From sequence record OP557969.1: DNA of 64,000 bases. One strand, 5' to 3'. The position numbers and the translations under genes were made by a program. Position 1 is the stretch's first letter. Every line of letters starts with the position of its first letter. Below are positions 2,427 through 62,438 of the stretch, in pieces. Under the pieces are notes generated by a model that searched no databases, was not told the origin of the DNA, and saw only the letters and a list, made by a program, of their open reading frames with translations.

Positions 2427-2440
2427 CTAAAGGTAATAAA

Positions 2441-2701
2441 ATGACAAAAGTAGTTCGTAAACGCCACATGATGAATATGGATGAATTTCGTACATTTGAC
2501 AAATATCGTACTATGTTTCGTATGCTGTCACAGGGTCGCCCAATCGTCATTGTAACAGAGAATTACATGTCACCTGAGATTATGTTTGGTAATTACGAAA
2601 AGGTCTTCATGTTGTACGTGAAGCGTGGATTGCTTACAATCAAGACATTAGCTGAAGCAACTGATGATGATATGGATGGAGATAATACCTTTACCATGTG
2701 A
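2441..2701 (+). CDS. hypothetical protein
   Basis: Intact ORF with AAGGT upstream. Confidence 0.75.
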   Translation: MTKVVRKRHMMNMDEFRTFDKYRTMFRMLSQGRPIVIVTENYMSPEIMFGNYEKVFMLYVKRGLLTIKTLAEATDDDMDGDNTFTM

Positions 2702-2779
2702 GGAAATATATGTCTGAAAAACCAAAAGAACCTTTAGATCGTGATGATGATTTTTATGACGAACGATATGGAGATGATA

Positions 2780-3031
2780 ATGAGTAAAAATAGTGCGGTG
2801 CTTAAAAAGATTTTAAAGGAAATTGATGGTGAATTTAATGTCACAGAAGAAGAATATCAGCATTGGAAGAAAGATTTCGAACAACTAACCGAGTATGATA
2901 AAGTGTTCAATATGATTGGCGTAATTAGCCAGTACTTACTTGGTGGAGGACGTGCAAGTGCTTCAATTCTGGCATCTGCAATCATCTGCACATCACGATG
3001 GTGTGATGAAAAAAGTTTGGAAGATTTCTAA
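2780..3031 (+). CDS. hypothetical protein
   Basis: Start moved to the ATG at 2780 after GGAG. Confidence 0.65.
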   Translation: MSKNSAVLKKILKEIDGEFNVTEEEYQHWKKDFEQLTEYDKVFNMIGVISQYLLGGGRASASILASAIICTSRWCDEKSLEDF

Positions 3032-3083
3032 ATAAGATGCTATAATATATCAGAGTACCTTAACAATATAAAAAGGATTTTAT

Positions 3084-4964
3084 ATGAAACCTATCCGAGT
3101 ACTATCTCTTTTTAATGGAATGAGTGTAGGATACATGGCATTAAAAGATGCTGGTATCCCTGTTGAAAAATATTATTCATCCGAAATTGACAAATTTGCT
3201 ATAGCTGAATCCCAAGCTAACTTCCCCGATATAATCCAATTGGGTGATGTAACTAAGTGGAGAGAATGGGATATTGAATGGGACAAGATAGATCTACTGA
3301 TGGGTGGTTTTCCATGCTTCCCAGCAGGAACTATGATAATGACAAATAAAGGTCATAAAGATATAAAAGATATAAAAATTGGTGATATGGTTCTTACACA
3401 CACTGGACAGTACCAAAAAGTATTGAGTACTGGTGTTAAAAAGGCTCCCACTCGTATTATTACGGGTCAAGGTCACCTTCCAATTGAATGTACCGATAAT
3501 CATCCATTTTGGAGTAGGGAACGTCTAGCCAATAAATGGAATAATCAACGCCGAAGATATGATTCTGTGTTTTCTGAACCGCAATGGGTAAATGCTATAG
3601 ATCTTACTAAACAAAGTTATATTTGTAATGTTAAAAATATTACACATAATACTGTAAGTGATAAAGATGAAAAATATTGGTATTTTGTTGGTCGTTTTAT
3701 GGGTGATGGATGTGCTAGTGTATCTAATAACAAATACAGTATTACTATTGTAGATTCATTAGATAAAGTTGATGAATTGAAAAAATGCTTTGATGATTTT
3801 GGATACAAATACACATTAGCTATTAAAGATAATCATGTAAGATGTGATATATATAGCAAAAAGCTTTATGATGAATTAATATGTATTGGGCATAAATCAC
3901 AAAACAAATGTTTACCACCTGAAATATTCAATGAAACTATCAATAACAAAGAAGCATTTATTAAAGGATACATGGATGCAGATGGTTGTGAGGATAAACA
4001 CAATAAAAAATACAAATTTACCACCACAAGTTATAAAATAGTTCTTGGTATGCAACAGTTAATCTTAGATACTTATCAAAGTCATTGTACTATTAGCCAA
4101 ACTGTTCCAAAAACAAAAAAATATATAAAAAATAAGTTGGTTAATCAGCTTCCGTATTGGAATGTTCATTTTAGCTATAATAAAATTAAAAGAGATGATG
4201 TAATATATGATGAAATTTATATATGGAATCGTGGTGTAAAAAGTAATGTACCAACCGGAGAATGGAAAACCGTTTACAATATTGAAGTTGCAGTAGATAA
4301 CACATATACAGCGAACAATATTGTAGTTCATAACTGCCAAGCGTGGTCAGTTGCAGGTAAACAGGGTGGAATAAATGATCCTCGTGGTATGTTATTCCAT
4401 ACAATGGTTGATATTTACCAGCACATAAAAAGTCTCAATCCAGACTTGAAAGTACTGTTCGAGAATGTTAAAATGAAAGAAGATTTCAAGCAATACATTA
4501 ATAGTGTTCTTGAGATGACACCAGTACTGATAAATTCCCAGCATTATACGCCTCACTTCAGGCAGCGATATTACTGGTACAGTACTGATAAACTTTTTAT
4601 ACCACCTGCATTATCCAATGCACCTAAACTTCAAGATATTATTGAAGATGGTTGGTACACTGACAGAACCGCTTCGTACTGTATAGATGCTAACTATTTT
4701 AAGGGTGGTGATTGTAACCAGTACTTTAATAAATCAAGAAGACAAATTGTTTTCAAAGAACCTGATATCGATAGGGATTTCCTTCTTGAACATGGTAAGC
4801 GAAATGTGGACTATCGTCATTTAACAGTACAAGAGTGTTGCATGTTGCAAGGAATTGATGTAAACTACTTCAAAGTTAGTAGTTCAACACAAGCATACAA
4901 AATGCTTGGGAATGGATGGACTATGCCAGTTATATCACACTTACTACGAGATATATTCTTTTGA
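3084..4964 (+). CDS. DNA (cytosine-5)-methyltransferase, intein-containing
   Basis: Motif I LSLFNG, SEIDK, GDV, motif IV GGFP|CQ split by an intein, ENV, RQRYYW, LTVQECCMLQG, YKMLGNGW. Confidence 0.93.
   Translation: MKPIRVLSLFNGMSVGYMALKDAGIPVEKYYSSEIDKFAIAESQANFPDIIQLGDVTKWREWDIEWDKIDLLMGGFPCFPAGTMIMTNKGHKDIKDIKIGDMVLTHTGQYQKVLSTGVKKAPTRIITGQGHLPIECTDNHPFWSRERLANKWNNQRRRYDSVFSEPQWVNAIDLTKQSYICNVKNITHNTVSDKDEKYWYFVGRFMGDGCASVSNNKYSITIVDSLDKVDELKKCFDDFGYKYTLAIKDNHVRCDIYSKKLYDELICIGHKSQNKCLPPEIFNETINNKEAFIKGYMDADGCEDKHNKKYKFTTTSYKIVLGMQQLILDTYQSHCTISQTVPKTKKYIKNKLVNQLPYWNVHFSYNKIKRDDVIYDEIYIWNRGVKSNVPTGEWKTVYNIEVAVDNTYTANNIVVHNCQAWSVAGKQGGINDPRGMLFHTMVDIYQHIKSLNPDLKVLFENVKMKEDFKQYINSVLEMTPVLINSQHYTPHFRQRYYWYSTDKLFIPPALSNAPKLQDIIEDGWYTDRTASYCIDANYFKGGDCNQYFNKSRRQIVFKEPDIDRDFLLEHGKRNVDYRHLTVQECCMLQGIDVNYFKVSSSTQAYKMLGNGWTMPVISHLLRDIFF
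3315..4334 (+). mobile_element. intein (340 aa) with LAGLIDADG homing endonuclease domain
   Basis: Starts CFPAGT, block B IECTDNHPFW, LAGLIDADG-like YFVGRFMGDG and FIKGYMDADG, ends VYNIEV...IVVHN followed by Cys+1. Confidence 0.93.
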
Positions 4965-6005: not shown

Positions 6006-6454
6006 AAATCGATGAACTGATTTATATTTTAGGTAACTTGCACAAAATATTGTTACATCGCAACGAGATGAATAAACTAGGGTATAATATAACTAATTTA
6101 AATGAAACATCATTTAAATATAACTCAATCACTGGTGGAAATTATAATATTGTGTATTGTCATGAAACTGACCCTGACTGCTATCAACTTACGTTATACT
6201 TTTATCCAACAAACCCTACCATTGTTCAAGACATATCATCAATATCACTTGACCCAGATGGTGAAATGAGTATAGAATATAGCTATGATTCTAAAAAAGA
6301 ATGTTACGTTGAAGATATGAAAAATATGTTTAACGATGCATATGTGTTCCAGCTAAGTACTGTACATGATGTTGGAAGTACTAATGGGCAATTTTGGAAT
6401 ACATGCTATTATCATATGATTGGAATTTGTAAATTACTAAAAGGCGATGATTAA
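6002..6454 (+). CDS. hypothetical protein, EExxFQxS-motif family
   Basis: NDAYVFQLSTVHD. Confidence 0.8.
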   Translation: MKIDELIYILGNLHKILLHRNEMNKLGYNITNLNETSFKYNSITGGNYNIVYCHETDPDCYQLTLYFYPTNPTIVQDISSISLDPDGEMSIEYSYDSKKECYVEDMKNMFNDAYVFQLSTVHDVGSTNGQFWNTCYYHMIGICKLLKGDD

Positions 6455-6837
6455 TGAAATACAGCATTGAAGTACATTACACTACTGGTGATACTGAAAA
6501 TCAATATAACATAGTTAAGACCATTGATGTTCAATGGGATACTAAAGAGGAAGCAGTTGCTGCTTTACAGTGTCTAAAAGAGCATTGGGTGTTTTATATG
6601 AAGCAAGATAATTGCCATACAAAAGAACGCGAAACTATCGTTAAAAATGCTAAACAAAAAGAGTGGTTTGACCCAATTTCACCAGAATATTCATTTTTGG
6701 TTAAAGTTGGTGGCGTGACAGTACCCTTACGAACACCGTGGAACGGCTACTTTGAAACTCTTCATAATGCACGAGTTGTCGCTGTTGACAATCCTGAACA
6801 AATCGATTTTGATTCATTGGACTGGAAAAAATTATGA
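6454..6837 (+). CDS. hypothetical protein
   Basis: Coupled start/stop overlaps on both sides. Confidence 0.8.
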   Translation: MKYSIEVHYTTGDTENQYNIVKTIDVQWDTKEEAVAALQCLKEHWVFYMKQDNCHTKERETIVKNAKQKEWFDPISPEYSFLVKVGGVTVPLRTPWNGYFETLHNARVVAVDNPEQIDFDSLDWKKL

Positions 6838-7277
6838 CAGTACTGCACCAATTGAAGAAGGTTAAGCATCCAGTTGTATATGAGGACTGGAAACGTCAGA
6901 AGCTGATGGGTGACTTTTATTACCCAAAATCTAAAGTTCTTGCGAATTCAAGATGTACATATATCAAACATAACGATAAAGATACAGTATTTGTTGAAAT
7001 GGGGTTCAATCCATCAAATACAATGTTCAGTACTAACCAAACATTTTACAAATTTCATATCCAAAAAGATGTATTTTCTATTAAAATTATAAAACATTTA
7101 GTTGAAGATCTGGTATACAGTGAAGAAAGAGTTCCTTTATCATTAGTGGATATTCCTTATAATAATTTAGAGGAAATGTACTTCCAACAGTTGACAGTAC
7201 AAGAAAACTTTGGTATGATAGGACTTCAAGAGTTAGAGATGATTAAGCAAATTCGTGATATCTACTTTAAGGGGTAA
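6834..7277 (+). CDS. hypothetical protein, EExxFQxS-motif family
   Basis: LEEMYFQQLTVQE. Confidence 0.8.
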   Translation: MTVLHQLKKVKHPVVYEDWKRQKLMGDFYYPKSKVLANSRCTYIKHNDKDTVFVEMGFNPSNTMFSTNQTFYKFHIQKDVFSIKIIKHLVEDLVYSEERVPLSLVDIPYNNLEEMYFQQLTVQENFGMIGLQELEMIKQIRDIYFKG

Positions 7278-7746
7278 CTATGCCAGTACGTAACAGTACT
7301 TCACGCTTTACGCTTCAACAGAAAGCAGATCTTTTGAATATGGCAAACAAAGATTCTAATTATTACTATCTAGTACTCGGTGGTTCAGTTGAAAAGATTG
7401 ACCTACGTGCGTGTATGAAATAACAAAGGGGATAAAATGAGCTTACGTGAATCATGGGAACAATTTAAAGAAGAGATTGGTTATCGTGGTGTTAAGATTG
7501 AACAAATCAATCGTACTGAAAGCATCAAAGCTAGTACTAATGGAACTACCTATGATCGTTATGATGAAAAGTATGGTTTACATTCTAAACCAAAGGATAC
7601 TGAATAATGGTGTATACTAACATTTTTACTGGTATTATGCGTAAGTTTGTTAATGGTATTGGATATGTATCCAATGACAACGGTAGTACATGGGTAAAAA
7701 ATAATACGTCCGAATCTTTAGTGAAAAGTCTTCCGTATTATAAAGC

Positions 7747-7775
7747 TTGACACATGAAAATGGAGTATGTATAAT
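7747..7775 (+). promoter_or_regulatory. consensus sigma70 promoter with an inverted repeat over the -10
   Basis: TTGACA-17-TATAAT; ggagta-tgtataa-tactcc overlaps the -10. Confidence 0.8.
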
Positions 7776-7807
7776 ACTCCAATATTAATCAAATGAGGAT
7801 ATGCGAA

Positions 7808-8380
7808 ATGGCTGGTGTTGATAAAATTTGTGAATTCAGTGGCGATTATGAAGGTTACGAAATGTACAAGTCCAAGCGTAATCACATTCAAGTACTGTCA
7901 AAATATCGAAAACATTTTCGTGGACATAAAGCAACATTGTATATTTTTGAGAATGGATATTCTGAAGTTTTCACAAGTGGTGGGTACAGTACAGCTAATA
8001 TGGCACATATCAACCCAAACCCAACTGAAGATGATTGGAATAGTGGTAATGCTTTTCGTATTTCAATTTTGAATAAAATGAATCGATACGACCGTTATTG
8101 TACATTCTTTGAAAATATTTCAGAATACAAGCAAGCATTAAAGAAATATAATCAACGCTTACTAATGAATTATGATTACATTCTTCATGTACCTACTGTT
8201 CCAGGTCAGGTTAATGGTCTGTACACGAACAGTACACATGATTTAACTGCGGTGAAGCGTCGTCTTAAACGTATGTTGGGTCATGGAAAACTAACTATCA
8301 AGATTATGCGTAATGAATCTATGTATAACTTTTTAAATGTTCTTCATTACACATTAAAGGATAAAAATGGAAGCGATTAA
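7808..8380 (+). CDS. hypothetical protein
   Basis: GAGGA RBS at about 7795; long ORF. Confidence 0.8.
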   Translation: MAGVDKICEFSGDYEGYEMYKSKRNHIQVLSKYRKHFRGHKATLYIFENGYSEVFTSGGYSTANMAHINPNPTEDDWNSGNAFRISILNKMNRYDRYCTFFENISEYKQALKKYNQRLLMNYDYILHVPTVPGQVNGLYTNSTHDLTAVKRRLKRMLGHGKLTIKIMRNESMYNFLNVLHYTLKDKNGSD

Positions 8381-29548: not shown

Positions 29549-30514
29549 GTGAAAAAACTTGATTTGAATACAATTGCAGATGAAGTTCTGGATGAATGCT
29601 TTGGTAATGAAGAAGTGAATACGCTGGATGCGTTAGAACCAGTTCAAGAAAAAGATAACATTGACGAGAAAAATAATGGTAATTTCAAGTTTAATATTAG
29701 TCTTAAGCGACCAGCAAATGTAACAAATGAAGATATTATTCGTGATATTCAAGCAGGTATTAACGTAAAGAAAAATACTGAACTATTAGTTCGTTATAAT
29801 TACGGCTTGATTATTGATGTTGCAAGTAAATGCACGTGTTATATTCCATTTGAAGATAAGATTTCATATGGTATCGAGGGATTCATGCGAGCATTAAAAA
29901 CATTTGACCTTAGTAAGAATGTAAAGTTCGCTACGTATGCATCGTCAAGTATCTATATGACTGTATACAATGAAAGTTCAGATGCTAATCATCTGGTCCA
30001 TTTCCCTCGTTACATGAGTGTTAATAAGATACAAGTGAAACGCTTCTGTCATAATTATGAGCGTCAGCATGGTTGCCGTCCTACACCAGAAATTATTTCT
30101 GAAGAGACTGGTATTGAAATCCAGCACGTTAAGAATTGTTTATTATTCCAAAGTGAATATACTTCACTGGATGCACCATTGGATGGTGTTTCTGATGGGA
30201 CGATGAGTGATATTCTGCATTCATCTGAAGGTGATTATAATCTTAATGTTGACAGTATTCGTGCACCGTTGCGTTATACCATCAACGAACTAACTAATGA
30301 GTTGAGTGCTAAGGAATGTGAGATTATTCAACGTGTTCATGGGTTAGGTGAATTTAATCCTGAAACACTACGTGAAATTGCTGATAGTGGTTTTATCGAT
30401 GACAACGGTAAGTGTGTAAAATCCAGATCTTCGGTTCATCGTAAATACAGTGATGCTCTTAAGAAACTCAAGAAATTAGTGCTTGCTAAAGGGTACGAAT
30501 ACGAAGATTTCTAA
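29549..30514 (+). CDS. RNA polymerase sigma factor, sigma70 family
   Basis: Region 2 LLVRYNYGLI..EDKISYGIEGFMRALKTFD...KFATYA; PTPEIISEETG; SLDAPL; region 4 ETLREIA...SRSSV; GTG start after AGGAG. Confidence 0.9.
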   Translation: MKKLDLNTIADEVLDECFGNEEVNTLDALEPVQEKDNIDEKNNGNFKFNISLKRPANVTNEDIIRDIQAGINVKKNTELLVRYNYGLIIDVASKCTCYIPFEDKISYGIEGFMRALKTFDLSKNVKFATYASSSIYMTVYNESSDANHLVHFPRYMSVNKIQVKRFCHNYERQHGCRPTPEIISEETGIEIQHVKNCLLFQSEYTSLDAPLDGVSDGTMSDILHSSEGDYNLNVDSIRAPLRYTINELTNELSAKECEIIQRVHGLGEFNPETLREIADSGFIDDNGKCVKSRSSVHRKYSDALKKLKKLVLAKGYEYEDF

Positions 30515-53579: not shown

Positions 53580-53914
53580 TGGAGTATTTTATTGATTTAC
53601 TGCCGTGGTATATGAAAGTGAGTATTTTATACTATATTATTAGTACTGGATTCTACTTCCTGATGTGGTTTTTTAAACGACCAATTTCAGTGTACATTGC
53701 TGATAACATGCTGCAATTAAAATTACAAGCATGGTTTTATATGGCGATGTTTATGCCTATTATTCACTATTCAATGATTAGTCTAGGTTTACGTTCTAAT
53801 GGTGAACCAATTGTATTAGTATTCTATTGGACTTCAACTCTAGTATATGTCGGTTTGTTGTTATACCCAATCGTTCATATATTACGTGCTAAAGTTCCTG
53901 ATGCGAGGTACTAA
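53576..53914 (+). CDS. three-TM membrane protein family, array B
   Basis: MWFFKRP; LRAKVPD. Confidence 0.85.
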   Translation: MMEYFIDLLPWYMKVSILYYIISTGFYFLMWFFKRPISVYIADNMLQLKLQAWFYMAMFMPIIHYSMISLGLRSNGEPIVLVFYWTSTLVYVGLLLYPIVHILRAKVPDARY

Positions 53915-54228
53915 TGGATATAGTAACATTGATTTACACGTTGTATTCATTCTATTTTATTATGTGTTGGATTGGATTTTTATTTGTACTGAAGACGTTT
54001 GATTATGTTGAAAGACAGATAAAAGAATTTTGTATTCCTTTTATTGGGTCAACCATAATTAGTATTACTTGTTTGTATTATTTGGTATGTGATCCACCAG
54101 ATAACACTGCAATGATTGACTTTATGTTAGCACCAACTACTGTTATTTTTTTATGTAGTCTGCTGCCACCTATTAGTCGTGGGTTAGCAGAATTTAGACG
54201 CAAACAAAAGCTTAAACGAGGGATGTAA
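53914..54228 (+). CDS. three-TM membrane protein family, array B
   Basis: Three TMs, basic C-terminus. Confidence 0.8.
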   Translation: MDIVTLIYTLYSFYFIMCWIGFLFVLKTFDYVERQIKEFCIPFIGSTIISITCLYYLVCDPPDNTAMIDFMLAPTTVIFLCSLLPPISRGLAEFRRKQKLKRGM

Positions 54229-54596
54229 TGGAAATCACACTTATTATATTAACTTCTATGTTGTTTATTAGTACAGTTGTTATTATTGGCAAGTTCTTCT
54301 GTGTATCCTTCTTGGAAACCGTATATGATGAAATTGCAGATGATTATGAATTAGAAGCAGGATTTTTTATTACGTATTGGGTTAGTTTATTACTGCTTAT
54401 CACAGTATGGGTTTTGCATATATTCCAATGGGGTATGGTTGGTGATGATCCATTACTGGGAATTATTTGTGCGACATTTGGGCTACTGACTGGTGCTGCC
54501 CACAATCTGATAGTAATTGTGCAAACTATAAAATGCGTATTAGTTCCACATTTTCAGAGAATGCACCAAAACATTAAACGCCGCAAACGAGGTTAA
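54228..54596 (+). CDS. three-TM membrane protein family, array B
   Basis: IGKFF; basic C-terminus. Confidence 0.8.
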   Translation: MEITLIILTSMLFISTVVIIGKFFCVSFLETVYDEIADDYELEAGFFITYWVSLLLLITVWVLHIFQWGMVGDDPLLGIICATFGLLTGAAHNLIVIVQTIKCVLVPHFQRMHQNIKRRKRG

Positions 54597-54597
54597 T

Positions 54598-54960
54598 ATG
54601 AACGGGATAGAGTTATCTGTGTTTGGTCAATCACTAATAATTATTAATACTTTCTTTTTCTCACTTAATTCATTTATGTGTATTGGGAAGTATTTTCATA
54701 AACGACCATTATCAAATATATATGATGTAATTCAAACGAGATATAGTCCAGCATATACTATAGTTATTAGCAGTTTCAATTTTGGTTTTGTTTTATTAGT
54801 AATTGGAATGTTAACATCAACGTTGAATATCATCACATTCGGTCTTATGATATGTTCATTGGCATTAACATTAGTTATATGTTGTTTAGTACTACACCTT
54901 ATGGTTCTATTATATTTAAAGATATATGAAATTCACCACCGCTTAGGTACGAGGAAATGA
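54598..54960 (+). CDS. three-TM membrane protein family, array B
   Basis: IGKYFHKRP; IHHRL. Confidence 0.8.
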   Translation: MNGIELSVFGQSLIIINTFFFSLNSFMCIGKYFHKRPLSNIYDVIQTRYSPAYTIVISSFNFGFVLLVIGMLTSTLNIITFGLMICSLALTLVICCLVLHLMVLLYLKIYEIHHRLGTRK

Positions 54961-54961
54961 T

Positions 54962-55333
54962 ATGAGTTATCGTGAAGTATTTTCTATAATTTCAATTATT
55001 ATGTTCAGTGCTGGAACATTGATTTGGTTACTATACTTTTTCTGTATTAATCCAGTGTATAATATGTTATGCAATATTAAATCAAGTACTGGCTATATGA
55101 CTTTTATGATCTTTATGGGATATTATTGTCTAAGCATTTTAGGTGTTTTTTTTGTTGTTATATTTGATATAGGGCCAAACAAGGACGGTCTACAAATGTA
55201 TGAGTTAATAACTATGTTTGGGTGTATGATACCAACCGCACTAATGTTTGTAGCTATTGGTTCTGGATGTATAAAGTTATACAATTATTTAAAATCCATT
55301 CATCATTACATTCATAATAAACGTATGTCCTAA
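54962..55333 (+). CDS. three-TM membrane protein family, array B
   Basis: LLYFFC; IHHYI. Confidence 0.8.
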   Translation: MSYREVFSIISIIMFSAGTLIWLLYFFCINPVYNMLCNIKSSTGYMTFMIFMGYYCLSILGVFFVVIFDIGPNKDGLQMYELITMFGCMIPTALMFVAIGSGCIKLYNYLKSIHHYIHNKRMS

Positions 55334-55378: not shown

Positions 55379-56026
55379 ATGAAATCGAAATTAGGTTTGT
55401 TTTACAGTAATTATTTTGTTAAGCAGCGTAAATTTATAAAGAAATACTTCTCCACAGAGAAGTCCGGTCCTATTATTTTTAAAAGATCAAAATATCATAC
55501 TTACTTAGCTGGTGTTAAACAGTCTAAAAAATTTATTGCTCTATTAAATAAAAATAAAGTGAAAGCTTCTTATGTTGAAACCAGAAAGAATTCCCCTATA
55601 ACTCCTAGTGATTTTATTGAGTACGGGTGTTTTTATATTGAGAATAATGGTAACACCTATTTTATGGATATTGATTGTAATACATCGAATCTTTTTAACA
55701 TTGTAATAAAACCATCAAAACAATATAATATTTATGGTGATGCTATTATCAAATTGATCAAAAACAAAGATTGGTTTGATTTTGAAATAAATGTTTTAGA
55801 TGAAAATTTTGATGAAGTACCCATTAACCCTGAAATTTGTGATATTCTAAATAGTTTAAAAGGTAGTAGCTACAATATAACATCTGATTTAATGTTTCAG
55901 TACTCTTTAATACATAAAGATATTGAAGATTATATTGTGTGTGCTAAAATCTTGAATTATCTGTATGATGAATTTAAAAAGAGTTCTAAAATCACAGCAT
56001 TCACCCTTTATAATATTTCTGTATAA
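55379..56026 (+). CDS. hypothetical protein, EExxFQxS-motif family (divergent), basic N-terminus
   Basis: TSDLMFQYSLIHKD. Confidence 0.75.
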   Translation: MKSKLGLFYSNYFVKQRKFIKKYFSTEKSGPIIFKRSKYHTYLAGVKQSKKFIALLNKNKVKASYVETRKNSPITPSDFIEYGCFYIENNGNTYFMDIDCNTSNLFNIVIKPSKQYNIYGDAIIKLIKNKDWFDFEINVLDENFDEVPINPEICDILNSLKGSSYNITSDLMFQYSLIHKDIEDYIVCAKILNYLYDEFKKSSKITAFTLYNISV

Positions 56027-56037
56027 TTTAAAATATT

Positions 56038-56063
56038 AAAGCCAGTGCTCTCGTACTGGCTTT
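56038..56063. terminator. bidirectional terminator between convergent genes
   Basis: aaagccagt-gctctcgt-actggcttt. Confidence 0.8.
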
Positions 56064-56067
56064 AATA

Positions 56068-57213
56068 TTATTTTTTCCAAGGAAGTAACGAAGTTGGAAT
56101 TTTGATAGGTATATTTGATGAAACAACATCAGGAAAATTTGCATCCCCACAAACATACAAATTATCGTCTTCGTCTATCAACAATATATAGTTGTAACTT
56201 CTACAAAACCCATTTAAACTTCTTCCCTCTAATGCAGATAAATTTATTTCAGTGAATTGTGTTATATATGTTTCATTTGAACCAACACCACATTGACCAT
56301 TAGCATTTATACCACAAGTAAGCAATTTATTATTGTTTTGAATTATACATGATGGTCCAGCAAGGTTCGTACCTAGTTCACCTACAACATTAACCTCACC
56401 TTGTAATGATAAATTTGGAATCACTGTACTCATTGGGACACGAGATGTATTTCCAACACCGGCTTGACCTGAACCATTAGTGGATGCTACTTTAACAGTA
56501 CCGTCATTAAGAAAAATATAAGATGTTTCGATTGTATTAACTGCTTGAGTAGCTGATGTTATTGACGTATCCTGTTTGAAACTAAGTACATTTGTTGTTG
56601 TCGAACCAGAGATAAATGTAGCACCTGCGTACCAATATGTTCCATCCTGGAGTACTAAACCAGTACTTCTAATTGAACACCCAGCACTTCGAACATTTTC
56701 TATATGACTATATGTAAAGGTTGATACAATTGAAGATTCACCATTACCGAATACCCCACCAGTACCTGCACCACAGAAAAACCATTTGCCGTTTTTCAAA
56801 AATACACGCATACAAGCAGAAATAACCACACTATCAATATCACTTGCAGTTACACCAAAATCGGTAAAGAAATGAGTTATATCAATCCAATTGCCACCAG
56901 TATTTGATGGGAGATGTGGAATTACCACTCTAGTCCCTGTGTACCAGATTGTATCATCATCTTTAATAACAAGCGTACCTTGAACACCACCCCAATACCT
57001 GATTACATTAGTATTAACAAGTGTCCACTCAGTAGATGATTCCGTTGAGCCATTACCACCTTGACCATATGATGATGAACCACACCAGTATAAATCGCCA
57101 TTTTTATTTAAATAAAATTTTGCATCAGCCGAACATTGTAATCTGTATTTGAATACTGTTTTTGGTGCTGGTGCAATATTTGCATACTTAATCATTCTTC
57201 CAAAAGGTATCAT
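56068..57213 (-). CDS. RCC1-like beta-propeller protein, MLPFGR-leader family
   Basis: True start MIPFGRMIKYANI at 57213; GDLYWCGSSSYGQGGNG and LLTCGINANGQCGVG repeats. Confidence 0.85.
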   Translation of the reverse strand: MIPFGRMIKYANIAPAPKTVFKYRLQCSADAKFYLNKNGDLYWCGSSSYGQGGNGSTESSTEWTLVNTNVIRYWGGVQGTLVIKDDDTIWYTGTRVVIPHLPSNTGGNWIDITHFFTDFGVTASDIDSVVISACMRVFLKNGKWFFCGAGTGGVFGNGESSIVSTFTYSHIENVRSAGCSIRSTGLVLQDGTYWYAGATFISGSTTTNVLSFKQDTSITSATQAVNTIETSYIFLNDGTVKVASTNGSGQAGVGNTSRVPMSTVIPNLSLQGEVNVVGELGTNLAGPSCIIQNNNKLLTCGINANGQCGVGSNETYITQFTEINLSALEGRSLNGFCRSYNYILLIDEDDNLYVCGDANFPDVVSSNIPIKIPTSLLPWKK

Positions 57214-57284
57214 ATTTCCTCCTTTATCCATTGTACTGTATTTAATCCAAATTAGAAAAGCCAGTATCAAGTACTGGCATTGTA

Positions 57285-58634
57285 TTATTGTAATGGAATT
57301 TCAGTGAGTGTTTTATATGTACTTCCGTTATACACCCCTCTCCAATATACTTTACCATCAGTGCTAATCACTAATAATCCATATGTTGTAAACCCAAGAG
57401 TACCACCAACATACATAGCATCTTTGATTCTAATACCAATGTCTTCATATGTAAATGACGCGACCGCACCCGCTTGCCATGAAGGACTAGCGTAGTAATC
57501 ACTATAAACACCATGTGCTTTATATATTGATGTTGTTCCTGGTTCAAAAATTACAGTTCCACAGTAGTTCATTCGTATTTTAGTACTGGATGACGTTGGT
57601 ACATTTATACCCACGTCATCTTTTATCCCTGTGGTTAGAACGTTAAAACCCCCCGCCACACGGTTGACATCATTCTCACCGATTGAATACATACCAACGT
57701 TGTAGCCCATATAATACACACTAGAACTTCCATTCCAGAAAGAAAAACCACCACCATTACCACAGCGATATAGTTGTGAATTTGAGCAGTACATCATACC
57801 TTCGTTTGTTGCATCAAATTCATCTGCTGTTCCGATCACAGCCACTGTAGTCCATGTTTTAATCACTTGGTTTGCACTAGCGGGTTTTTGAATACCATAT
57901 CGTATATTATATCCTTTACCGACTATTGTACCATCTTCTAATTTGGCATAAAGTACAGGTCTATTACCAACAAAATACATATTATTGTGTGACATGTCTA
58001 TTGTACGTCTTAATGAAACTACTTTTTTTGTCAATTGATTATCTTTAGTAAAAGACGTAAAGTAGTAATCCGATGTTGAATTGTTTATTAAACCTTGTAT
58101 TGACAACCCCATATACCAGATTTCTCCCTTACTATTCAAAGCTGCCAAAATACAACTATATTTTGAAGTGTATGTTGGGTTTACTGAAGTTGCTGGTCCT
58201 TTGTCATATCCACCACAGAATACCATCTCCACAACTTCACCTACGTTAGCAAAATAAGAAGATACGTTGATAAAACCATTTGTTATAAAAGGTGCTGTAT
58301 TTATACTTGAATGTGTGAATATCCCATTTGCATATACACCACAAAAATGATATGAACCATCATTATCTTGGACTATTATCCCATTTGATAGTAACCAAAA
58401 ATTGTTTACATTTTTTCTTACTAATTCGATTCCTGCCCCATTAGTTGGTGTTATACCAAAAGAAACATATTTTGTTTGACCAATTCCATATAAATTTCCA
58501 TTTGATGCTAATATTGCACCAAACCAATTACCACCACCATTCTTGTTATGACCCATGCCGATAGAATCGAATTTCTTAACAGTAGGAATTTGTACTTTAT
58601 TTCCATAATTCATCATCCTTCCAAAAGGTAACAT
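57285..58634 (-). CDS. RCC1-like beta-propeller protein, MLPFGR-leader family (divergent)
   Basis: MLPFGRMMNYGNK; GNLYGIG, GEIWYMG, DGKVYWRG repeats. Confidence 0.8.
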   Translation of the reverse strand: MLPFGRMMNYGNKVQIPTVKKFDSIGMGHNKNGGGNWFGAILASNGNLYGIGQTKYVSFGITPTNGAGIELVRKNVNNFWLLSNGIIVQDNDGSYHFCGVYANGIFTHSSINTAPFITNGFINVSSYFANVGEVVEMVFCGGYDKGPATSVNPTYTSKYSCILAALNSKGEIWYMGLSIQGLINNSTSDYYFTSFTKDNQLTKKVVSLRRTIDMSHNNMYFVGNRPVLYAKLEDGTIVGKGYNIRYGIQKPASANQVIKTWTTVAVIGTADEFDATNEGMMYCSNSQLYRCGNGGGFSFWNGSSSVYYMGYNVGMYSIGENDVNRVAGGFNVLTTGIKDDVGINVPTSSSTKIRMNYCGTVIFEPGTTSIYKAHGVYSDYYASPSWQAGAVASFTYEDIGIRIKDAMYVGGTLGFTTYGLLVISTDGKVYWRGVYNGSTYKTLTEIPLQ

Positions 58635-58705
58635 ACTTCCTCCTTATTCATCATACTATATTTAATACAAATAAGAAAAGCCAGTATCAAGTACTGGCTT
58701 TTACA

Positions 58706-59896
58706 TTACAATTGTCTAGGTGTATCCAGAACATATCTATTTGTTTTAGGACCACCATCATCATAAGTTCCGGTTGAATATATATTTTTCATATCAGCAG
58801 TTAGGAAAGTACGCAACGAACCGCGATATATTTTTATTTTATCATACATAGAATATGTTATTTCTGACGGCAATGGACATGCAGTAAATTTACCAATGGT
58901 AGCATCATAACCAACACCCAATGTGCCAGCATAACTACTCGCATTTAAACCAGTTGCATATACACCTGCACTCGTAACTAGTATACTAGATTGTGCTGGG
59001 TATCCAGTATGGATTGAATAATAAGTACCGGGTGGTAATGTAGCACTATTATTTCCTAAAACTCCATTAACATTGCTAGATGTAGTTTTATTTCCCCATG
59101 CTCCATTATTAGCTAATCCACCAACTAGAAACTGACGTGCTCCTGTACTTGGATTCTCTACTAAAGCACTGACAGCACCAAATGAACAAACAGTATATTG
59201 TAATGTTTTTGTATATGTGGTACTTGGCTGATATAAAGTATATTCATTAAATGGTGTCCATGTGGTACTAGTACTTATGCCAGATGTACTACCACCAATA
59301 TATAAATTATTTTGTGTATCAAAAAACATTGCACAGTAATTTGTTGACTGTATTTGTGCAATATCTACATCTGGTGTTACCGCTTTAACAAATGAACCAT
59401 CTGATATTTGATAAGTAGTTCCTGTACCATCTGCGAATTGTCTAGCACTATTCCACCCTGTACTCCATATTGTATTATTATCCATTAAGAAAGTAAACCA
59501 CGTAGTACCTGCATACATTTGTTTAATTGAAGTACTTGAACTTTGTTTGTACAAATTTTCAATATATTGGTTATAACTTAAAAACGTAGTAGTACTAGTT
59601 TCTAAACCAATATGACTACCATATCCACAATAAAAATAATTTAAGTCATTATCTTGAACTAACAAAGTTCCTTGTGTCATCCAGCAATCTTTGACATTTT
59701 CTCTAATTAATGTCCACGACCTTACTGCATTATTATTTCCTCTACCAAACTTCCCCCAACTATTACTGCCTCGTGCGTATAGTTGACCGTCGGTATAAAG
59801 TACAACAACCTCAGTATCAGTTGGTATTATTTTCTTAATTTGAAGTGGGACGGGTACAATATTCCCGTACTTAACTATTCTCCCAAAAGGTAACAT
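58706..59896 (-). CDS. RCC1-like beta-propeller protein, MLPFGR-leader family
   Basis: MLPFGRIVKYGNI; GQLYARGSNSWGKFGRG. Confidence 0.85.
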   Translation of the reverse strand: MLPFGRIVKYGNIVPVPLQIKKIIPTDTEVVVLYTDGQLYARGSNSWGKFGRGNNNAVRSWTLIRENVKDCWMTQGTLLVQDNDLNYFYCGYGSHIGLETSTTTFLSYNQYIENLYKQSSSTSIKQMYAGTTWFTFLMDNNTIWSTGWNSARQFADGTGTTYQISDGSFVKAVTPDVDIAQIQSTNYCAMFFDTQNNLYIGGSTSGISTSTTWTPFNEYTLYQPSTTYTKTLQYTVCSFGAVSALVENPSTGARQFLVGGLANNGAWGNKTTSSNVNGVLGNNSATLPPGTYYSIHTGYPAQSSILVTSAGVYATGLNASSYAGTLGVGYDATIGKFTACPLPSEITYSMYDKIKIYRGSLRTFLTADMKNIYSTGTYDDGGPKTNRYVLDTPRQL

Positions 59897-59966
59897 ATTC
59901 CCTCCTTATTCATTATACTATATTTAATACAAATAATAAAAGCCAGTATCAAGTACTGGCCTATAT

Positions 59967-61136
59967 TTAAACTGGCGAATCTAATATAAATTCTAAACTA
60001 CTAATGCCACCATATGTGACATCTGTTCCCGTGCTATATACAAAATTACCATCAGTTATATAAGTTCGGTTATAACTACCTGCCATCTGTGACTTACTAT
60101 AATCAAACCCATCAGGTACGATTGCTTTGGTATATACTAATGCATTAGTAGATGTACCAATACCTAACATACCAGCTTGTGTAGATTGATTGTAGCCGCA
60201 ACAATATATACCATCTGTTGTAGCAATAACTTGGTTATAATTTGAAGTATTGTTAGCAATGCTTACTACATCACCAGGTGGCATTAGTGATGCTGTTTGT
60301 ACATCAAATGCTCTATAATCTTTGAGAGAACCATCTTTCCCATCTGCTTGTGCACCAAATATTCTTGAACCACCATTTGCGATGATAGTTTTACCAGTGG
60401 GATCAGTGCCTATTGCCATTGCCATTGAAGTACCATTATTCACATAGTACTTTATATTAATTGTATTACTTAAGCTGGTAGGAGCACCATAATATATATT
60501 ATATAACTTACTTCCTGAACTTGTAACTGCATTGACTCTTCCTGTATAAAATAACCATCCTTGGCTTGTAACATAACCGTGCATTAAATTACTTGCAAAC
60601 AATTTAACAGGTAATTGATTTGCTGCGGTAGGAACAGTACTTTTGACGAATCTACCAGAAACATTGTTAATTGTTGTCCCATCACCCAACTGACCATCCG
60701 ACCCTACTCCAGTACTCCATATTGTTTGGTCTGATAGTAACACACTTGTAGTCTGATAACTAACGGCTATATCTAATATTGGTAATGTTAATGTATTGAA
60801 TATAGGCATAGCAGATGTCCATATTGATACTCCTGACCCTTTCATACCAACAGTTGTTGAACTTCCACTGTACCATATTTCATTATTGCTTTTCTTAACA
60901 ACTATCGACGTGGCTCCCATCCAAAAATCTTCAACACCAGAAGTACTAAAAGTCCATGTAGTAACAGTATTTTTGTGACCTAAACCCAAAATACCATATG
61001 CATTATCACCACGCACATATAAATCACCACTGTTTGTTAAAACAGCAACATTATAGTTGTTAGCAAGTATTTTTTTAATATTTGGTTTAGCAGGTGCAAT
61101 ATTCCCGTACTTAACCATCCTCGCAAAAGGTAACAA
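59967..61136 (-). CDS. RCC1-like beta-propeller protein, MLPFGR-leader family
   Basis: TTG start MLPFARMVKYGNI; GDLYVRGDNAYGILGLG, IWSTGVGSDGQLGDG. Confidence 0.85.
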   Translation of the reverse strand: MLPFARMVKYGNIAPAKPNIKKILANNYNVAVLTNSGDLYVRGDNAYGILGLGHKNTVTTWTFSTSGVEDFWMGATSIVVKKSNNEIWYSGSSTTVGMKGSGVSIWTSAMPIFNTLTLPILDIAVSYQTTSVLLSDQTIWSTGVGSDGQLGDGTTINNVSGRFVKSTVPTAANQLPVKLFASNLMHGYVTSQGWLFYTGRVNAVTSSGSKLYNIYYGAPTSLSNTINIKYYVNNGTSMAMAIGTDPTGKTIIANGGSRIFGAQADGKDGSLKDYRAFDVQTASLMPPGDVVSIANNTSNYNQVIATTDGIYCCGYNQSTQAGMLGIGTSTNALVYTKAIVPDGFDYSKSQMAGSYNRTYITDGNFVYSTGTDVTYGGISSLEFILDSPV

Positions 61137-61213
61137 AATTAAATCTCCAAAATTAAAATAATTATATAGTATTTACAAAAAATACTAGTACATATTTCAG
61201 TACTGGCCTATTA

Positions 61214-62335
61214 TTAAAAGGGCAACGGTAACTCAGTAAAAGTACTTACGTCCGGTAAACCATACATTGAATTAGCATCACCACAGTAATACCACTTCGT
61301 AGAATCATGTACCACCGATAAACGCTGTGCACATAACACTTCCTGTATGTCATTAAACACCATCGGGACTAACTCATATGTATCCGCAAATGAAGATACA
61401 CCACCACTCGCATGAAAAGTATTCGTCCCAGCATAAAATAACTGATTAGTGTTCTTACCCACAGCAAATGTCATCAAATCCCCATCATTCTCCCATAAAG
61501 AAGAAAACTTATCAACACTACCAGAAAGCTCTGTGTAAGTACTCGTAATGGCATTCGCCGCCGCCGCATTACCCATCTGTTTATTCAAGTTCTGTCCAGC
61601 AATAAAATATCTCGTTCGTGCACTAGAATCAGTATATAATAACCCAGTGTTCGTAGTCATCATTCCAATGTCCTTAATCGTCATACCAGTCTGTGAATAA
61701 CTTAGATACGAAGTTAAATTAACATTATTACCCAACGAACCGTTAGAACTCATACCACAACGATGTAATATACCACTTGTATCAACGTAGATAGTACTAA
61801 CTAAACTCGTATACAACTCTTGTACATTATTCGCAATAAACACAGCAGTCGCCTTATTACTAACCCCACCAAATGATAGGTTATTATCAAATCCCTTAGC
61901 GTATAATTGATTATTAGTAGTCAATAATCCAATCGTGTAATAAGACATTTTCATATCCCTTACTGTACTCAAATCTACTGCCCCAAATTGATACGTAACA
62001 TCTGTCCATTTGAAAATCTGTGCACTACCAACACCACCCGTTTCAAACCATTTGTCACCACAGTACAATATGCGATTATCCTTAGTAAAGATAACTGTTA
62101 ACAATCCACTACCACACGCAAACTTTACATCACTTCTAACCTTCGTCCAATCACGTACATAGGTAGTGGTGTTATTACCTATACCTAACTTGCCATAACG
62201 GTTATAACCACGCACCCATAAATCACCACTCTTAGTAATTAATAGTAATGCGTCTCCTGTACTTATTATTCGAAATCCCGATCTAGGATCAGGTACAATA
62301 TTCCCGTACTTAACCATTCTCCCAAAAGGTAACAT
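61214..62335 (-). CDS. RCC1-like beta-propeller protein, MLPFGR-leader family
   Basis: MLPFGRMVKYGNI; GDLWVRGYNRYGKLGIG. Confidence 0.85.
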   Translation of the reverse strand: MLPFGRMVKYGNIVPDPRSGFRIISTGDALLLITKSGDLWVRGYNRYGKLGIGNNTTTYVRDWTKVRSDVKFACGSGLLTVIFTKDNRILYCGDKWFETGGVGSAQIFKWTDVTYQFGAVDLSTVRDMKMSYYTIGLLTTNNQLYAKGFDNNLSFGGVSNKATAVFIANNVQELYTSLVSTIYVDTSGILHRCGMSSNGSLGNNVNLTSYLSYSQTGMTIKDIGMMTTNTGLLYTDSSARTRYFIAGQNLNKQMGNAAAANAITSTYTELSGSVDKFSSLWENDGDLMTFAVGKNTNQLFYAGTNTFHASGGVSSFADTYELVPMVFNDIQEVLCAQRLSVVHDSTKWYYCGDANSMYGLPDVSTFTELPLPF

Positions 62336-62438
62336 ATTTCCCTCCTTTATTCATCATCTCATATTTACCCCATAAAGAAAACACTTGACACCCTTTCAGT
62401 ACTGTTGTACAATAGAAGGAATATAAGGAGAACTACAC

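Follow-up and report, generated by a model that had tools for sequence, protein, structure and literature searches.

Divergent RCC1-like propeller cassettes with a constant N-terminal leader in Escherichia phage ph0011 suggest a virion-incorporation tag in RaK2-like jumbo phages

Background

Multiple genes for RCC1-like proteins, eleven of them in phAPEC6 with eight of the products detected in virions by mass spectrometry, have already been published (PMC7247149, PMC5259590), and these 'DNA condensation' paralogues of phAPEC6, 121Q and PBECO4 are the closest described relatives of the genes treated here. The present study treats this gene family, at the corresponding locus, in Escherichia phage ph0011 (Asteriusvirus; record OP557969.1, 348,217 bp). 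Open reading frame (ORF) calling revealed five tandem genes on the minus strand at positions 56068-62335 of the window, i.e., the final 64 kb (64,000 nucleotides) of the record, to which all coordinates refer unless a record is named. Their products carry a constant N-terminal leader, below also called the tag, in front of divergent bodies. In GenBank the five genes are labelled 'putative DNA condensation protein', 'hypothetical protein' or 'X-linked retinitis pigmentosa GTPase regulator'. The earlier papers propose DNA condensation and mention neither the shared N-terminal tag nor Kelch or lectin bodies, the promoter-terminator structure of the cassettes or their shuffling (PMC7247149, PMC5259590).

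The internal proteins of phage T4 (PMC3012670) resemble this system in that a constant N-terminal tag of ~10-13 residues precedes unrelated bodies, which are encoded at a hyperplastic locus and targeted to the particle. They differ in the sequence of the tag, in the possession of a conserved protease site (hydrophobic-x-Glu), and in being small proteins instead of large propeller or lectin bodies. A second parallel is found in the PeSL (promoter-early stem-loop) cassettes of T4-type phages (PMC2839356, PMC4122927), in which terminator hairpin and promoter are likewise repeated around single ORFs in variable regions, and related phages exchange modules by recombination at these repeats. However, the promoter of the ph0011 cassettes is of a late type (TAAATA) and not early, and the repeat runs into the coding sequence of the leader, so that recombination preserves an in-frame tag. 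The ph0011 cassettes are an analogue of the PeSL system, not a member of it.

Several binding proteins per virion, with a shared N-terminal anchor and variable C-terminal specificity, are also known from phages of the CBA120, phi92 and K64-1 type. Their anchors are folded domains of ~100 residues or more, and belong to trimeric spikes or fibres whose bodies are fibrous or have enzymatic activity, whereas the putative anchor in ph0011 is a 13-residue peptide on compact propellers, and K64-1 lacks the tag. A full-text literature search for the leader strings retrieved no paper. The shared tag, its other folds, its link to virion incorporation, the cassette anatomy and the uncoupled evolution of the leader were likewise not found in the searchable literature.

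The N-terminal leader

In transcription order, and all on the minus strand, the array consists of g5 (61214-62335, 373 aa, body type K), g4 (59967-61136, 389 aa, TTG start, body type D), g3 (58706-59896, 396 aa, body type B), g2 (57285-58634, 449 aa, body type J) and g1 (56068-57213, 381 aa, body type A). The proteins are RCC1-like, with g2 as a divergent member of the family. As a first-pass annotation of the window had noted, all five open with M[LI]PF[GA]R[MI]xxY[GA]N[IK]. The corresponding 13 codons are located at 62297-62335 in g5 (MLPFGRMVKYGNI), 61098-61136 in g4 ((M)LPFARMVKYGNI), 59858-59896 in g3 (MLPFGRIVKYGNI), 58596-58634 in g2 (MLPFGRMMNYGNK) and 57175-57213 in g1 (MIPFGRMIKYANI). 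The true start of g1 is the ATG at 57213 and not the TTG at 57270 that opens the longest ORF, because leader and ribosome-binding site stand at the former.

The near-identity of the leader at the DNA level and the divergence of the bodies, both claimed in the same annotation, are borne out by the comparison of the paralogues. Leader codons 1-13 are 74-97% identical in DNA, codon-aligned bodies only 38-44%, and between bodies the protein identity is 22-30%. The stretches 59852-59896 and 62291-62335, starting points of g3 and g5, agree in 43 out of 45 bases. At residues identical between g3 and g5 the same codon is used in 11/11 cases in the leader and in 34/75 cases in the body. A degenerate 37-nt leader pattern has five matches in the window, none in 100 shuffles, and exactly five in the entire 348,217-bp genome; protein searches of ph0011 yielded no paralogue beyond g1-g5.

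The residues L2, P3, F4, M/I7, Y10, G11 and N12 are conserved, and the consensus of the 12-13-residue tag is M-L-P-F-x-R-[MI]-x-x-Y-G-N. The charge of the tag varies between a K-class (xRMVKYGN) and a D/E-class (VRM[FL][DE]YGN). Neither within the leader nor behind it do 66 cassettes share a conserved Glu (K, N, D and E all occur at position 9), and cassette alignments display nothing conserved downstream of the tag. We interpret the lack of a conserved Glu-containing protease site after the tag as an indication that the tag is probably retained in the mature protein, and reject a cleavable capsid-targeting sequence on the same grounds. Two further readings were dropped: a membrane signal, as the charge is not conserved and the hydrophobicity too low, and an N-degron, as the N-terminal Met stays on when Leu follows.

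Distribution of the tag and presence in virions

Searches with the first 21 residues of g3 (tblastn) recovered the tag from 61 phage records, all of them RaK2-like jumbo phages, with 1-15 copies per genome. It occurs in Asteriusviruses of E. coli and Salmonella, in Salmonella phage Munch and its relatives, in Klebsiella phage fENko-Kae01, in the Mimasvirus phages CBB and GAP32, in the Eneladusvirus phages BF and fHe-Yen9, in Erwinia phages and in Xanthomonas phage XbC2. With five copies ph0011 has the lowest number among the Escherichia records listed, equal to that of TH47. Klebsiella phage K64-1 (Alcyoneusvirus) possesses neither the family nor any ORF of at least 150 residues opening with M[LIVM]PF. 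The tag is not confined to one fold, as IMG/VR loci and CBB carry it on RCC1-like propellers, Kelch propellers and Laminin_G_3 (ConA-like lectin) bodies. Its peptide motif is kept across genera despite divergence of the DNA and despite missing intergenic repeats, both in CBB and BF, where the genes are 10 nt apart, and in the dispersed genes CBB_144 and CBB_247. The array of Serratia phage BF (record 348437-356836) has nine genes, and in most of them the tag is shortened to MLPFPIIS..., which keeps MLPF but drops YGN; MLPF is therefore the most conserved core of the tag.

Published mass spectrometry provides the link to the particle. In phAPEC6 virions gp003, gp005, gp006, gp007, gp009, gp010, gp549 and gp551 were detected (PMC7247149), every one of which is tagged after the gp numbering was checked against the phAPEC6 record. 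This corresponds to 8 of the 13 tagged genes, compared to 62/551 genes overall (P 1.4e-5). CBB has 11 tagged genes, of which nine (CBB_144, 247, 536, 537, 548, 549, 551, 552 and 553) were found in virions versus 55 of the 554 ORFs overall (hypergeometric P 2.4e-8). All six CBB virion proteins that the CBB authors listed as absent from GAP32 are tagged, and two of these six, CBB_144 and CBB_247, lie far from the array amid metabolic and recombination genes. The tag thus predicts incorporation whatever the fold or the genomic position, and this is the strongest argument for an addressing or docking signal.

Tagged proteins were likewise detected in virions of JP4 (JP4_577 and JP4_581; PMC12648861 supplement) and GAP32 (gp1), and three PHROG-4219 proteins are among the virion components of the unrelated phage W70 (PMC11370258). 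The ph0011 proteins are tied to these data by orthology to different degrees. g4 is 79% identical to the virion-detected gp003 of phAPEC6, and g1 is 60% identical to the virion-detected gp551/gp001 and 94% to its UE-S1 orthologue. Orthologues of g3 are 85-97% identical (91% in phAPEC6), those of g5 occur in UE-S1 (97% identical) and TH47, and those of g2 in A4 and Turkey5. The virion association proposed in the first-pass annotation is consistent with the orthologues of g4 and g1 and with the tagged proteins of CBB, JP4 and GAP32. Its reading of the leader as a common assembly or docking tag gains from the three unrelated folds, from the unpacked leader in the structural model described below and from the off-array CBB proteins.

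The phAPEC6 record itself (MK817115.1) deserves a comment. Its last 2,421 bases (350178-352598) are identical to bases 3-2423; either two cassettes are genuinely duplicated or the assembly overlaps itself. In addition, the record gives no annotation for two complete cassettes (2434-3543 and 6063-7253) or for the greater part of another (7325-8059), so that mass-spectrometry searches were unable to find them.

Fold and composition of the bodies

PHROG 4219 covers all five proteins. The bodies of g1, g3, g4 and g5 match the Pfam families PF25390 and PF13540, with the PF25390 matches below the curated cut-off of that family. In particular, g5 matches the RCC1-like domain PF25390 with E 7e-19 and PHROG 4219 with E 1e-56, g4 has RCC1, RCC1_2 and RLD matches, and g1 matches RLD with E 5e-16. 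No RCC1 match was obtained for g2 in the Pfam search, and g2 joins the family via PHROG 4219 (E 4e-16) and a partly confident model only. A family profile built from 24 sequences matched the Protein Data Bank (PDB) entries of HERC1 RLD3 (E 7e-32), RPGR (E 5e-31), RCC1 (E 7e-20) and also UVR8, and its match to BLIP-II was not significant (E 0.41).

AlphaFold2 (AF2) folding covered g3 and g2. The g3 model (mean predicted local distance difference test, pLDDT, 76; predicted template modelling score, pTM, 0.82) is a closed seven-bladed propeller, for which Foldseek returned UVR8 (E 1e-17, template modelling score, TM, 0.73-0.79 over ~390 columns) and also HERC/RPGR domains as best matches. Residues 1-12 have a pLDDT below 50 and are unpacked against the propeller in the model, from which the leader would be a free extension instead of the propeller's closing strand. 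The g2 model has a lower pLDDT of 59; its confident blades comprise residues 1-265 and 415-449, i.e., ~4-5 blades only, with HERC2 RLD1 as structural match (E 1.5e-8). The description of all five bodies as RCC1-like propellers consequently stands for g3 by its model and for g1, g3, g4 and g5 by Pfam, and is qualified for g2.

The similarity to RCC1, UVR8, the RLDs of HERC proteins and BLIP-II is one of fold and profile, with a sequence identity of 13-19%. Unlike RCC1 and its kin, the present proteins occur in a bacterial setting without Ran or chromatin, and the BLIP-II match falls short of significance. The chromatin role of eukaryotic RCC1 is that of a Ran exchange factor on nucleosomes, missing from bacteria, which counts against a function in DNA condensation.

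The bodies are rich in Gly, Ser, Thr, Asn and aromatic residues, as had been noted before: G+S+T+N make up 36-40% of residues and aromatics 10-14%. The isoelectric point (pI) is 5.4-8.6, each protein has 24-33 K+R versus 22-29 D+E, and the N-terminus is a hydrophobic tag and not a basic tail. This composition does not fit DNA-condensing proteins. Being near-neutral and lacking a basic tail, the proteins leave the 'DNA condensation' label unsupported.

Architecture of the cassettes

Each of the five genes has its own TAAATA motif on the minus strand, 24-33 nt upstream of the start codon, and a ribosome-binding site 4-8 nt upstream, GGAGG in four genes and GGAG in the TTG gene g4, in agreement with the first-pass annotation. 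The TAAATA cores are located at 62362-62367 (g5, 26 nt before ATG; GGAGG 62341-62345), 61170-61175 (g4, 33 nt before TTG; GGAG 61145-61148), 59921-59926 (g3, 24 nt before ATG; GGAGG 59901-59905), 58659-58664 (g2, 24 nt before ATG; GGAGG 58639-58643) and 57239-57244 (g1, 25 nt before ATG; GGAGG 57218-57222). The TTG start of g4 (61134-61136) stands behind the weak GGAG, whereas TH47 with an otherwise identical upstream region has ATG; the g4 cassette may therefore be poorly translated in ph0011.

A hairpin of the form GCCAGTAC..GTACTGGC followed by a T-run recurs after the genes with a folding free energy (dG) of -10 to -17 kcal/mol and z-scores (z) of -4 to -7.6, with the exception of the copy after g5. 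The hairpins after g4 (59940-59962, dG -12 kcal/mol, z -4.1), g3 (58676-58702, dG -13.6 kcal/mol, z -4.6) and g2 (57260-57278, dG -10 kcal/mol, z -4.0), all on the minus strand, agree with the notion of a similar terminator for each cassette. This notion does not extend unchanged to the two ends of the array. The minus-strand copy after g5 is degenerate (61185-61206, dG -6.3 kcal/mol, z -0.8), and the array is closed after g1 by a longer, 17-bp bidirectional terminator (56032-56069, dG -17.2 kcal/mol, z -7.6) that also serves the convergent gene 55379-56026. A direct repeat of 63-112 nt with 83-86% identity extends over hairpin, promoter, ribosome-binding site and leader.

The TAAATA motif is not restricted to the array and also stands ~25-45 nt before neck, sheath, long-tail-fibre and other structural genes of ph0011. 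It is present at -75 to -15 of 46 of the 263 ph0011 ORFs with a ribosome-binding site, compared to 2.1% expected (P 3e-28). In CBB and GAP32 the motif ATAAATA was predicted as late promoter by MEME (PMC5259590). Promoters of the sigma-70 type are not enriched in the array (32 found versus 34.7 expected). These motif data are in line with the late expression assumed earlier, and we infer that the five cassettes are probably transcribed late. Array fragments also occur in Logan contigs of wastewater RNA libraries, from which neither strand nor time of expression can be read. The plus-strand gene at 29549-30514 encodes a member of the sigma-70 family, in which regions 2 and 3 and, weakly, region 4 are recognisable; this factor is a possible reader of the TAAATA promoters.

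Turnover of the arrays

The first-pass annotation had proposed to compare the composition of the array between isolates. We typed the bodies of seven Asteriusvirus arrays by similarity, with the following content in transcription order: K D B J A in ph0011; E X A C N D B G F Y H I Z in phAPEC6; E A C A B G E F (fragment) H I in 121Q; L A A C D B M J in A4; K D I Q R S T in TH47; E K O C F G B M A in UE-S1; and N C L A D U O V B F H J W in Turkey5. Content and order both differ. The seven genomes contain 26 body types, whose order is conserved in part and clearly rearranged otherwise. In the A4 record the array is followed downstream, without a change of strand, by two untagged genes (314 and 674 aa; 342745-345682) that ph0011 lacks.

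The leaders do not simply follow the bodies. Type B bodies carry the leaders GRIVKYGN in ph0011, ARMMNYGN in phAPEC6, VRMFDYGN in A4 and VRLFDYGN in Turkey5; one body type thus bears different leader classes between phages, and adjacent cassettes within a genome share a class. Between paralogues of the same genome, whose bodies are 28% identical, the leader DNA is 87.0% identical, and between orthologous bodies (84% identical) in different genomes 85.5%. As leader identity tracks the genome at least as much as orthology, leader and body have separate histories. The g4 cassette of ph0011 is a mosaic, of which the upstream region is shared with TH47, the body with A4 and Turkey5, and the leader class with phAPEC6. 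In UE-S1 the homology to the g3 cassette starts at the terminator hairpin. Alignments of types B and D place the mosaic breakpoints to either side of the leader as well as at the hairpin, and in 2017 metagenome contigs other bodies or intergenic regions are joined at 62299/62300, the inner edge of the g5 leader. The earlier idea that cassettes are swapped at the leader and terminator repeats accords with these breakpoints. The same five-cassette array was found in two animal-gut metagenomes, but as these may have a connection with the source sample, we do not count them as independent evidence.

The alignments were built with paralogues from IMG/VR loci, as the homologue search gave six close g3 orthologues only. 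The ratio of non-synonymous to synonymous substitutions (dN/dS) in the bodies is 0.13-0.5, which indicates purifying selection and thus functional bodies. Positive selection on the bodies is not supported by these values, nor by the proportion of variable sites, which is only slightly higher in loops (0.27) than in strands (0.20). As judged from the sequences, the 'hypervariable' character of the bodies is an expression of old paralogue divergence and repertoire turnover, not of rapid point evolution.

Function of the tagged proteins

The interpretation to which we incline, with some reserve, is that the leader is a virion-incorporation tag on interchangeable, non-enzymatic propeller binding modules, encoded in late, exchangeable cassettes and likely displayed on the particle. 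Each cassette would be transcribed late and terminated individually, its product being an RCC1-like binding module with a flexible N-terminal tag. This short hydrophobic peptide probably docks at one common site of the particle, by which any tagged body may be loaded into virions. The bodies, old lineages under purifying selection, are most likely accessory adhesins or lectin-like binders on the particle surface, with the unexplained 'hairs' and fibres seen in CBB and phAPEC6 as candidate sites. The ~110-nt junction unit of terminator hairpin, TAAATA promoter, ribosome-binding site and leader would provide the homology for recombination, and recombination at the junctions may lead to gain, loss and reordering of cassettes and to leader conversion, with an isolate-specific repertoire as the presumable outcome.

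Several observations weigh against this interpretation. The virion mass spectrometry comes from the relatives phAPEC6, CBB, JP4 and GAP32 and not from ph0011. Body types J and K (g2 and g5) have no orthologue in phAPEC6, and the g3 orthologue is unannotated in the phAPEC6 record, hence undetectable by its mass spectrometry. Tagged proteins yield 1-8 unique peptides, by which they are minor components of the virion. The late timing is read from the promoter motif. The pattern of a constant tag and variable bodies equally fits internal packaging of the T4 type (PMC3012670), and the high synonymous identity in the leader (11/11 codons between g3 and g5) could mean a constraint at the RNA level.

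The most serious alternative, though a rather unlikely one in our judgement, is that the tag corresponds to a T4-like capsid-targeting sequence, and that the propellers reside in the prohead core or inner body, are ejected with the DNA and bind host proteins. BLIP-II, an RCC1-like inhibitor of beta-lactamase, and T4 IPI*, which acts on GmrSD, may serve as model inhibitors. The architecture is the same as in T4, whose highly diverse internal proteins share only the conserved N-terminal capsid-targeting sequence (PMC3012670), and the phages in question possess a T4-type prohead protease and scaffold as well as a visible inner body (PMC7247149). The low abundance in mass spectrometry also speaks for this alternative, and both RCC1-like and Kelch propellers are classic protein-protein binders. 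However, the tag is probably retained, given that no conserved Glu protease site follows it, and Laminin_G_3 bodies and surfaces rich in G/S/T/N and aromatic residues are more usual in fibre proteins that bind carbohydrates. A tail tube, moreover, is ill-suited to the passage of rigid propellers of 41-49 kDa, which also counts against internal packaging. The CBB authors expected the proteins of the external 'hairs' among the morphological genes absent from GAP32 (PMC5259590), and it is among such genes that all six of the corresponding CBB virion proteins carry the tag. We therefore favour surface display over internal packaging because of the lectin-type bodies that share the tag, the lectin-like composition, the missing protease site and these six CBB proteins, though none of these reasons is decisive.

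A more far-reaching variant goes as follows. MLPF..YGN would be a portable virion-addressing peptide of RaK2-like jumbo phages, by which every protein opening with it enters the particle, and the array a set of injected, BLIP-II-like propeller inhibitors against host defence or surface-remodelling enzymes, i.e., the jumbo-phage counterpart of the T4 internal proteins, with cassette exchange as an arms-race mechanism. We consider this speculative and improbable.

It is very unlikely that the leader is conserved primarily as nucleic acid, i.e., as a promoter, ribosome-binding-site and initiation cassette maintained by gene conversion or for expression, while the bodies provide the virion association. 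The unusual identity of synonymous leader sites between paralogues would be explained in this way, as would the continuation of the repeat upstream across ribosome-binding site, promoter and hairpin, and the fact that leader variants track the genome neighbourhood. Yet the peptide motif persists despite diverged DNA and without the intergenic repeats, as in CBB and BF and in the dispersed CBB_144 and CBB_247, and a tag common to unrelated folds in virions is hard to explain by the bodies alone.

That the proteins are 'DNA condensation' proteins organising the packaged genome on the inner body, as the GenBank label and a suggestion for phAPEC6 have it, draws on a name carried over from eukaryotic RCC1, on virion presence, on speculation in PMC7247149 and on its repetition for phage W70 (PMC11370258), but is hardly credible in view of a pI of 5.4-8.6, of a near balance between K+R and D+E and the lack of a basic tail, of Kelch and lectin-type bodies with the same tag, and of 1-15 copies with a body set that differs per isolate, which is ill-suited to a core packaging function.

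The 'RCC1 / DNA condensation' genes, of which Asteriusviruses carry several copies, have stood out as a curiosity of annotation since 2013-2020, and the tag model replaces this label by a testable one. If it is correct, a sequence rule would predict minor virion proteins across a group of jumbo phages (9/11 in CBB) and point to candidate components of the unexplained hairs and fibres of phAPEC6 and CBB. A natural short tag would also become available for mounting cargo on jumbo phage particles or inside them, together with a means of approaching the variation in host interaction of these therapy-candidate phages. With only five cassettes, ph0011 is the simplest genome for testing the model.

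Candidate docking partners

A phyletic screen for ph0011 ORFs present in the tag-positive CBB and BF and absent from the tag-negative K64-1 retained 14 ORFs, mostly metabolic. The structural ones are a gp34-like fibre subunit, a 259-aa protein beside the long-tail-fibre gene (record 154400-155179) and a 529-aa protein (record 260385-261974), homologue of CBB_321. With one negative genome in the screen, these ORFs are only a lead towards docking partners. The 259-aa structural protein was considered as a docking hub and is a poor candidate, as it is itself variable; six peptide patterns of 6-8 residues taken from it had no matches in IMG/VR contigs, 121Q included. A 3322-aa virion protein (record 173164-183132) was considered as a repeat hub, and its C-terminal 2,278 residues (173164-180000) have no Pfam match.

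Neighbouring regions

On the plus strand, convergent on the propeller array, a series of tandem paralogues encoding small multi-pass membrane proteins occupies 53914-55333 and reaches back to ~43818. The distant phage CBB keeps the same neighbourhood with at least five 'putative membrane protein' genes beside its tagged array, and as both are retained side by side the two arrays are syntenic across genera.

The tagged array of CBB (record 350196-355464) stops ~460 bp before the annotated 22-kb terminal repeat, which begins at 355924, and direct terminal repeats of ~20 kb have been reported for Asteriusviruses (PMC13070987). It is on these grounds that the tagged array may adjoin the physical end of the genome; in the ph0011 record 1.7 kb remain after the array.

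Finally, a near-consensus sigma-70 promoter (TTGACA, 17 nt, TACAAT) is located at 62385-62413 on the plus strand, followed from 62440 onward by a run of genes for proteins of 60-75 aa. As this promoter is directed away from the array, the latter adjoins an early-type transcription unit.

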